From positions 3,906,001 through 3,970,000 of the forward strand of contig CP075495.1 in assembly GCA_021613535.1 (NCBI GenBank): DNA of 64,000 nt. Reading direction: 5' to 3'. The position numbers were made by a program, and so were the translations under genes. A model generated the notes under the pieces. The model saw only the letters and a program-made list of their open reading frames with translations. It ran no database searches and was not told the origin of the DNA. This DNA comes from Adineta vaga. Lineage: Eukaryota; Animalia; Rotifera. Shown one piece after another: positions 40,301 to 41,296 of the stretch (within the stretch, counting starts at the first letter, position 1; each line of letters opens with the position of its first letter).

Positions 40301-41296
40301 TTCGGATAACCATTGAACTTTATAAGTAGTATCAGCATTATCAGCTAGATTTTCATCATCACTATCATCATCTTCTTCTTCAGTATCATCATCATAAATT
40401 GAATTAATCATATCCATATTCGATTGTTCTGCATAGGATTCTTGTTCACTCCATTCATCAAACAATTGAGCTTGATCAAAATCATCAAAATCATCATCGA
40501 GTGATTTCTTTTTTGATAGAATTGTTTGATCTTCTTGAATCTTTTCACACTGTACACAACCGTTTGAATTATTTTTAAATATGAAACATTGTAAACACAT
40601 TGTATGACCACATGAATCTTCACTAATGGGTCGACGAGAAATCGGATCATAGGGTTGTGTACACAGTGGACAGAGAGATGAATCGATTTTTTTCGGAAGT
40701 GATGGTGATGCTGTTGTTGTTGTTGTTGTGAGTGGTGGTGGCAATTGAGGCTTATGGGCAGAAGGAGATGCTACCACAGTAGGCTCGGTTTTATTGATGA
40801 GAAAAGACGAAATAGATGTTTGAGTTTTTTTGATAACAGAAGATGCTTCTGGTTTTGGTGTTGTTTTAGTCGAATTCTGAAAATAAAACTCTCACTCAGA
40901 ATATATGATGAGAGAATTCATTAGTTTTACGTACATTGAGACTCAATGATAGTTTTGATAAATCTCGACTTGGTGTAATTGCTGTTGTTGTATGCGTTGA
41001 AGTTTCTGGTTGTTTAACAATCGTTGATGTTGATTGATGTGTAGATAAAGATAATCGTGGAAGATCTGGTAATTTCAATGATATTGTTTTTCGAACAGGA
41101 ATAATATTCGTATTTATACGAAATATAGGTCTAAATTCAAAAATATAGAGAATTATCATTTTAACAAGAAAATCTCAACTTACGATGGTAATGGATTAGG
41201 TTTAATAACTTTTGTTTGAGCATCTTTTGTATAATCATAGAAAATTTTCAATTGTTCAGAGAGATTATTTTTTATTTTTGATGTTCGATCAATCAT
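37387..41296 (-). CDS. BLM: Bloom-syndrome-type RecQ helicase (helicase, RQC, HRDC) with N-terminal RING finger
   Basis: N-terminal NNLSEQL; MPTG|[11 protein letters not shown]; [12 protein letters not shown]|HDFRPDY; [13 protein letters not shown]; CRR...YFGE...CDNC; degenerate HRDC; basic tail. Confidence 0.9.

Follow-up and report, generated by a model that had tools for sequence, protein, structure and literature searches.

A conserved RING finger in the N-terminal arm of bdelloid BLM helicases and its possible role as a built-in ligase module

Introduction

An SF2 ATPase and a RING E3 are found in the same DNA-repair polypeptide in Rad5, HLTF and SHPRH, where the RING is inserted inside an ATPase of the SNF2 family. 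RINGs of the RNF4/Slx8 type and those of Roquin and TRIM32 belong to stand-alone ligases without a helicase; the RING of RNF4 is C-terminal and dimerizes via its tail. Human BLM opens with a motif of the NNLxEQL type and has an acidic patch ahead of its helicase domain. The bdelloid rotifers are the animals best known for the survival of massive DNA breakage.

The closest described system is the set of Blm proteins of the bdelloid Adineta vaga, for which Hecox-Lea and Mark Welch (2018; BMC Evol Biol 18:177, PMC6264785) reported an N-terminal RING-Ubox in all five copies, namely A, B1/2 and C1/2, with HRDC only on copy A, B and C being without it. In the same study (PMC6264785), the RING was found to be completely conserved between the alleles C1 and C2 amid fast-evolving flanks, and all the A. 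vaga Blm copies were expressed and desiccation-responsive, with responses that differ among copies.

The locus considered here lies in a window of A. vaga DNA, i.e. the whole stretch of 64,000 nucleotides that was analysed (assembly GCA_021613535.1, contig CP075495.1, positions 3,906,001 to 3,970,000). Unless a contig or locus is named, coordinates are those of the window. The gene belongs to the same family as the A. vaga Blm copies of the published work (PMC6264785), which fit three haploid loci, and nothing essential differs. A preliminary description of the window had implied that the fusion of a RING with a RecQ helicase is new, naming an existing account of it as grounds for giving up that claim; such an account is available for A. 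vaga since 2018 (PMC6264785), and the RING-BLM fusion is, then, real but already known.

Gene structure and identity

The gene for a BLM-like RecQ helicase spans 37390-41296 on the minus strand, on which all of its features lie, and is composed of about 12 exons separated by short introns; by tblastn, two bdelloid orthologues (P0152 and P0150) align on 41296-37390 from residue 1 to the end. Exon 1 (41184-41296) contains the start codon and the NNLSEQL motif (41249-41269), with 86-89% identity to the orthologue N-termini (tblastn); exon 2 (40935-41130) encodes a Ser/Thr-rich linker that ends with LSKLSLSLN; and exon 3 (40205-40867) is a single open frame of 221 codons that includes linker, RING, acidic region and helicase entry. 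Within exon 3, the C3HC4 RING finger extends from ligand 1 to ligand 8 over 40547-40672, a conserved acidic patch of 16 residues is found directly after it (40451-40498), and the 19 residues of the helicase entry (40205-40261) form the end of the exon. The exons of the RecQ helicase core, which carry Walker A (GGGKS), a DEAH-type box and Helicase_C, are placed by tblastn at 38902-40152, and the Pfam DEAD profile matches 39759-40106 with an E value of 5e-10 in a search of individual exons. They are followed by an exon with the RecQ zinc-binding domain (38579-38881; Pfam RecQ_Zn_bind, E 5.7e-5), by the RQC/winged-helix region (37842-38525; Pfam RQC, E 1.4e-9; 86% identity to orthologues) and by a C-terminal exon with a basic tail (37390-37800). 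HRDC was not detected in the latter, Pfam at E<=1 finding none in the C-terminal ORFs at 37387-37749 and 37839-38075; many animal BLMs are likewise without a detectable HRDC.

The exons of the window were searched one by one, and full-length comparisons refer to database proteins of other bdelloids. The Pfam matches on the exons comprise DEAD, the RecQ zinc-binding domain and RQC, by which a BLM RecQ core is recognized, and the BLM-type N-terminal arm is also present, with NNLSEQL in exon 1 and the acidic patch in exon 3, both common to the bdelloid orthologues. In database searches, the nearest non-bdelloid matches of the bdelloid copy-A paralogue are proteins named BLM or Bloom syndrome helicase, a match set to which the window copy is tied via tblastn. 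As judged from its sequence, the window gene is the BLM (Bloom-syndrome-type RecQ) orthologue of a bdelloid rotifer and one of three paralogous loci. In common with canonical BLM/Sgs1 (human BLM, Drosophila Blm and yeast Sgs1), it has an N-terminal motif of the NNLxEQL type, an acidic patch and a helicase entry (FPHT/YPHT), as well as RecQ core, RecQ zinc-binding domain and RQC. The window copy differs from the canonical proteins in being without a detectable HRDC and in having the RING, which is found in 0/219 of the non-bdelloid RecQ/BLM proteins retrieved.

As to the neighbouring genes, the one directly downstream of BLM has a strict RING match of its own at 36341-36505 on the minus strand, C-terminal and C3HC4_3-like (…CVICMERAIDSVITTCGHSAVCLPCG…CPVC), and a RanBP2-type zinc-finger-like WPCSKC motif near 36800. 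Divergent from the promoter side of BLM, two similar ORFs on the plus strand (41530-42021 and 43936-44388) open with a Cys/His-rich segment (C..C…C..C..C..H…H), followed by a Gln-rich or coiled region, and may represent a small paralogous zinc-finger family.

The RING motif, its reading frame and its conservation

The eight Cys/His ligands of the RING follow the canonical spacing C-x2-C-x16-C-x-H-x2-C-x2-C-x9-C-x2-C. A strict RING regular expression (C-x2-C-x9-39-C-x1-3-H-x2-3-C-x2-C-x4-48-C-x2-C), applied to the six-frame translation of the window, gives two matches, one at exactly 40547-40672 on the minus strand and the other in the neighbouring gene, and none in 100 mononucleotide shuffles of the window. 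The motif sits within a stop-free frame of 232 codons (40196-40891), and exon 3 is bordered by the acceptor ttttcag and the donor GTAAAT, so placed that the helicase entry closes the exon before the GT and the next exon opens with FRSNQLEAI at 40152. The Adineta steineri orthologue P0152 aligns (tblastn) with residues 120-360 on 40873-40205 and with residues 361-394 on 40152-40051; the alignment is unbroken over the intron that separates exon 3 from the next exon and, therefore, the junction is the same as in related proteins and the protein is contiguous. The RING precedes Walker A by about 135 residues, is not part of the helicase core, and has more than 800 residues on its C-terminal side. 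The preliminary description had claimed an in-frame C3HC4 RING in the BLM helicase, its residence in the same exon and frame as the helicase entry, and an N-terminal NNLSEQL motif; all three are borne out, by the exact match and the shuffles, by the single 232-codon frame and by exon 1, respectively.

An alignment of 30 bdelloid BLM RINGs was assembled that covers Adineta, Rotaria and a Didymodactylos RING exon absent from the annotation. All eight zinc ligands are invariant in 30/30, which answers in the positive, for bdelloids, the question, posed with the earlier claims, of their conservation across rotifer BLMs. R29, G37 and F45 are also found in every sequence, P30 in 29/30 and G53 in 28/30, and the residue two positions after ligand 1 (C1+2) is L, I or V in 29/30. 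The RING segment is 81% identical to six orthologues, as opposed to 42-44% for the flanking linkers and 75% for the helicase entry; the acidic-patch region has a mean identity of 75% to six orthologues, as calculated over residues 126-145 of the exon-3 translation starting at 40864, a range that largely overlaps the acidic patch at 40451-40498. At the level of sequence identity, the RING is shown to be the best-conserved part of the BLM N-terminal arm, and the gap between 81% and 42-44% in the flanks argues for strong purifying selection on it and against its being an intron.

When the 166-residue RING exon was compared by phmmer with 1.84 billion representative proteins, 22 matches were obtained, mostly ORF fragments of bdelloid contigs, which sort into the three paralogue lineages and among which there is no non-rotifer RecQ; on the contig of one of them, the RING ORF is followed by DEAD and RQC ORFs. 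The phmmer match P0010 is an unrelated protein of 887 residues with four tandem repeats, each of which has a BLM-like RING (CPTC…IRPLIDTCGHVRCSLC…CSLC). Annotated full-length models with both RING and RecQ are available for Rotaria sordida, R. socialis, R. magnacalcarata, Rotaria sp. Silwood1 and Silwood2, as well as for Adineta steineri, A. ricciae and A. vaga, the RING being N-terminal of Walker A in 16/16 Adineta and Rotaria models.

These data bear on the reading of the fusion as an artefact, in which read-through has merged two genes or the segment that encodes the RING is spliced out of the mRNA as a cryptic intron. Nothing was found in its favour. Annotated models do err at these loci: copy A has been joined to SKP1, and in Didymodactylos the RING exon is skipped (see below). 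However, RING and helicase entry occupy one stop-free exon, and the 126-nt segment is far more conserved in protein than its flanks in three paralogues and at least eight species. Furthermore, the RING is kept by independent gene models of seven other bdelloid genomes, and the 2018 analysis of Hecox-Lea and Mark Welch includes transcript data (PMC6264785). Gene merging and cryptic intron are, thus, both rejected on the shared open frame, the protein-level conservation and the independent models. An artefact is scarcely credible and, as far as such comparisons go, effectively refuted; the single open frame and the contiguous orthologue alignment across the intron uphold the earlier statement that the fusion does not come from gene merging.

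Paralogues, distribution and origin

The A. vaga genome (6 contigs, 100.8 Mb) contains, according to an exon search, three RING-BLM loci, on contigs C2 (the window), C5 and C6. In the C5 locus (C5:10587521-10587700) the RING ORF is followed by an intron and then by the helicase, and in the C6 locus (C6:12322276-12322978) the RING is likewise upstream of the helicase. HRDC (PF00570) is found by the whole-genome search in the C6 paralogue only; this locus therefore fits the published copy A, and the window copy is one of B/C. The 3′ part of the C6 paralogue, including HRDC, is made of three tandem units of approximately 2.0-2.1 kb with 94-99% identity. In the region L017 (C6:12313500-12323499) the repeats are at 2455-3148, 4471-5164 and 6574-6873/7923-8222, and the three HRDC matches are about 2 kb apart; the units have arisen either by recent tandem duplication or in the assembly. 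A SKP1-like gene is also present directly upstream of copy-A BLM on contig C6 (L004:2704-3170), and in the NCBI models of A. vaga, Rotaria socialis and Rotaria sp. Silwood1 it is joined to the helicase as one gene (PF03931/PF01466 on P0143, P0145 and P0149). The adjacency of a gene for an SCF subunit and that for a RING-helicase is conserved in Adineta and Rotaria.

The annotated BLM protein of Didymodactylos carnosus (P0151) is without a RING, and a loss of the domain in this species was suggested by it. The suggestion is rejected, an intact RING ORF (L009:4002-4141) being found within an annotated intron of unusual length (1.1 kb) of the gene (region L009:3214-4337, where L009 is contig CAJNOK010000089.1 of GCA_905249995.1). 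The spacing of this RING is C-x2-C-x15-C-x-H-x2-C-x2-C-x8-C-x2-C; its exon has acceptor tttcag and donor GTATGT, with the 3′ junction in frame with the next annotated exon, and a candidate extra exon (L009:3649-3766, donor GTGAGT) would make the frame continuous towards the 5′ end. With such splice signals and frames, the P0151 gene model is probably wrong in skipping the RING exon. The same model is also fused N-terminally to a C2H2-jaz zinc-finger gene, which looks like an annotation error.

Outside the bdelloids, a cross-brace motif, even a loose one, is found in 0/219 of the RecQ/BLM proteins retrieved, 140 of which have 150 residues or more ahead of Walker A; among the matches listed, there is no BLM of a monogonont, seisonid or acanthocephalan. 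For the 219 proteins retrieved, this check of the architecture agrees with the statement of the preliminary description that BLM/Sgs1 orthologues have an N-terminus without a RING. In the bdelloids, each of the three paralogue lineages has the RING, which is found in Adineta and Rotaria and, as a coding exon, in Didymodactylos DNA; it would, therefore, have been gained once, before the sampled bdelloids and the paralogues diverged, and a single origin that predates the split of Didymodactylos from the Adineta/Rotaria group is probable from this distribution. As in Rad5/HLTF/SHPRH, SF2 ATPase and RING are united in one polypeptide, but the ATPase of bdelloid BLM is of the RecQ type and the RING is N-terminal of its core instead of inside an SNF2 ATPase; therefore, the fusion arose independently of that family. 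The derivation of the RING from an RNF4 gene of the same genome was also considered and is not supported, the best genomic match to the RING profile after the three BLM loci being a Roquin-like gene.

Affinities of the RING

Eight Pfam RING families match exon 3, all under the gathering cut-off, the best being zf-RING_UBOX (E 3.7e-4; 20.9 vs 25.2 bits). A profile of the domain, run against the sequences of the PDB with hmmsearch, matches RNF4 (E 2.6e-8, single RING), Roquin-1 (4.8e-8) and TRIM32 (2.5e-6); CWC24 is also among the matches, and TRIM5, TRIM21, BRCA1, COP1 and TRAF6 are weaker. The similarity to the RINGs of RNF4/Slx8-type proteins, Roquin and TRIM32 consists of the long first loop and of the core R-P-I...CGH-x2-C-x2-C; the bdelloid RING differs from these in being fused to a helicase and in that the linchpin Arg is not conserved. 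The likeness to the SUMO-targeted ubiquitin ligases (STUbL) of the RNF4/Slx8 type, which combine a C-terminal, dimerizing RING with SUMO-interaction motifs clustered at the N-terminus, is confined to the RING itself, which in the bdelloid protein is internal, with more than 800 residues after it.

The structure of the domain was predicted with AlphaFold2. With an alignment of 16 sequences the model was poor (pLDDT 55.5) and was left out of the fold search; with 36 sequences the mean pLDDT rose to 70.8, the blocks within residues 11-60 averaging 71-87, and the model presents a beta-hairpin and a helix that make a RING-like beta-beta-alpha core. Foldseek finds no match in the PDB at E<=0.001, and its top rows (TRIM32, Roquin, c-Cbl, RNF168 and RNF4) have E>=0.1; their ranking is informative, though not significant. 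Nearly every neighbour given by Foldseek and VIA is the RING or U-box domain of an E3. In VIA, Z is between 3.5 and 5.0 (TRIM32, Z 5.0), values that are middling by the tool's own scale, and the structural match with Roquin has an rmsd of 0.9 over 34 residues. The neighbours of this predicted structure are, overall, supportive of a RING fold, not decisive.

The positions that are associated with catalysis in RING domains were also inspected in the bdelloid BLM RINGs. At the position that follows ligand 8, where many active RINGs have their linchpin, Arg/Lys is not conserved; the residue is E in 8, Q in 10, K in 7 and another one in 5 (n=30). Pro is common after ligand 7 in RINGs, and an aliphatic residue at C1+2 is the classical E2-contact position. 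The former is absent, with I, S or V in its place. With the aliphatic C1+2 residue kept and the linchpin variable, the hints on the predicted E2 binding and ubiquitin transfer are mixed.

Possible function

The RING is placed between the NNLSEQL motif and the acidic patch/helicase entry, within the N-terminal regulatory arm. We lean, by a little, towards an E2-recruiting, built-in ligase module in the N-terminal arm of BLM. The domain would fold as a two-zinc cross-brace RING and recruit an E2 enzyme, and, in this manner, a ligase of the ubiquitin (or SUMO) pathway would travel with the helicase to the DNA structures bound by BLM. The targets of the ligase might be BLM itself, which would be turned over or regulated, or neighbours such as Top3-alpha/RMI1, RPA and RAD51. 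The most likely function of the domain would be the recruitment of an E2, with E3 activity exerted in cis or upon neighbouring proteins at the DNA substrates of BLM; in the literature found, neither the binding of zinc or of an E2 nor ligase activity is reported for the bdelloid BLM RING.

The main rival to a built-in E3 is a RING that is a real zinc module but a non-catalytic one, serving as a protein-protein or dimerization interface like those of BARD1, Bmi1, MAT1 and CWC24; it could, for example, hold paralogous BLMs together, or anchor BLM on chromatin or on a separate E3 that is active. Such an interface is a real possibility, although it is not what we would expect to find. The variable linchpin and the missing Pro after ligand 7 are consistent with it, as are the sub-threshold Pfam scores and the inclusion of non-catalytic RINGs (CWC24, MAT1 and BRCA1/BARD1-type) among the profile matches, and a RING on each of three co-expressed paralogues would permit hetero-dimers. 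Many active RINGs, however, are without a basic linchpin, the best matches in both sequence and structure are active E3 RINGs (RNF4, Roquin, TRIM32, TRIM21 and RING1B), and the aliphatic E2-contact position is kept in 29/30, all of which speaks for a catalytic domain.

A minority possibility, which we regard as improbable, is that the RING is an element of the SUMO pathway, acting as a SUMO E3 or, in the manner of RNF4, as a STUbL within BLM, which would put in cis the Sgs1-Slx5/Slx8 relationship of yeast genetics. It is established that Sgs1/BLM is genetically linked to STUbLs and that BLM is SUMOylated. The RNF4 RING is the top sequence match among solved structures, its long first loop included, but Roquin and TRIM32 nearly equal it in profile score, and the next-best RING of the genome is Roquin-like, not RNF4-like. 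Similarly, hydrophobic-flanked acidic stretches are present after the RING, but the RING is internal and, therefore, without the C-terminal dimerization tail of the RNF4 type.

Significance

Beyond the 2018 paper, the present analysis contributes the conservation of the RING across bdelloid genera at the level of the single ligands, together with the strong purifying selection on it; the affinity to RNF4, Roquin and TRIM32, which is useful for choosing E2 enzymes and for designing mutants; and the absence of the domain from the non-bdelloid proteins retrieved, along with the probable annotation error in Didymodactylos and the probable single origin before the split. Among the proteins retrieved, the combination of RING and RecQ is confined to the bdelloids, a group with unusual meiosis, and its function is worth an experiment.

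The furthest-reaching reading that may be built on these sequences, and one that we consider rather unlikely in its entirety, is that the RING of bdelloid BLM is active as an E3 of the RNF4/Roquin kind, and the protein a self-contained helicase-ligase found in bdelloids only, with a single gain at the base of the class and no loss in any paralogue. If this were true, the protein would ubiquitinate, perhaps in a SUMO-dependent manner, the proteins of recombination intermediates, and would contribute to biasing the repair of massive breakage by desiccation or radiation, and the modified meiosis of these animals, toward non-crossover or gene-conversion outcomes.
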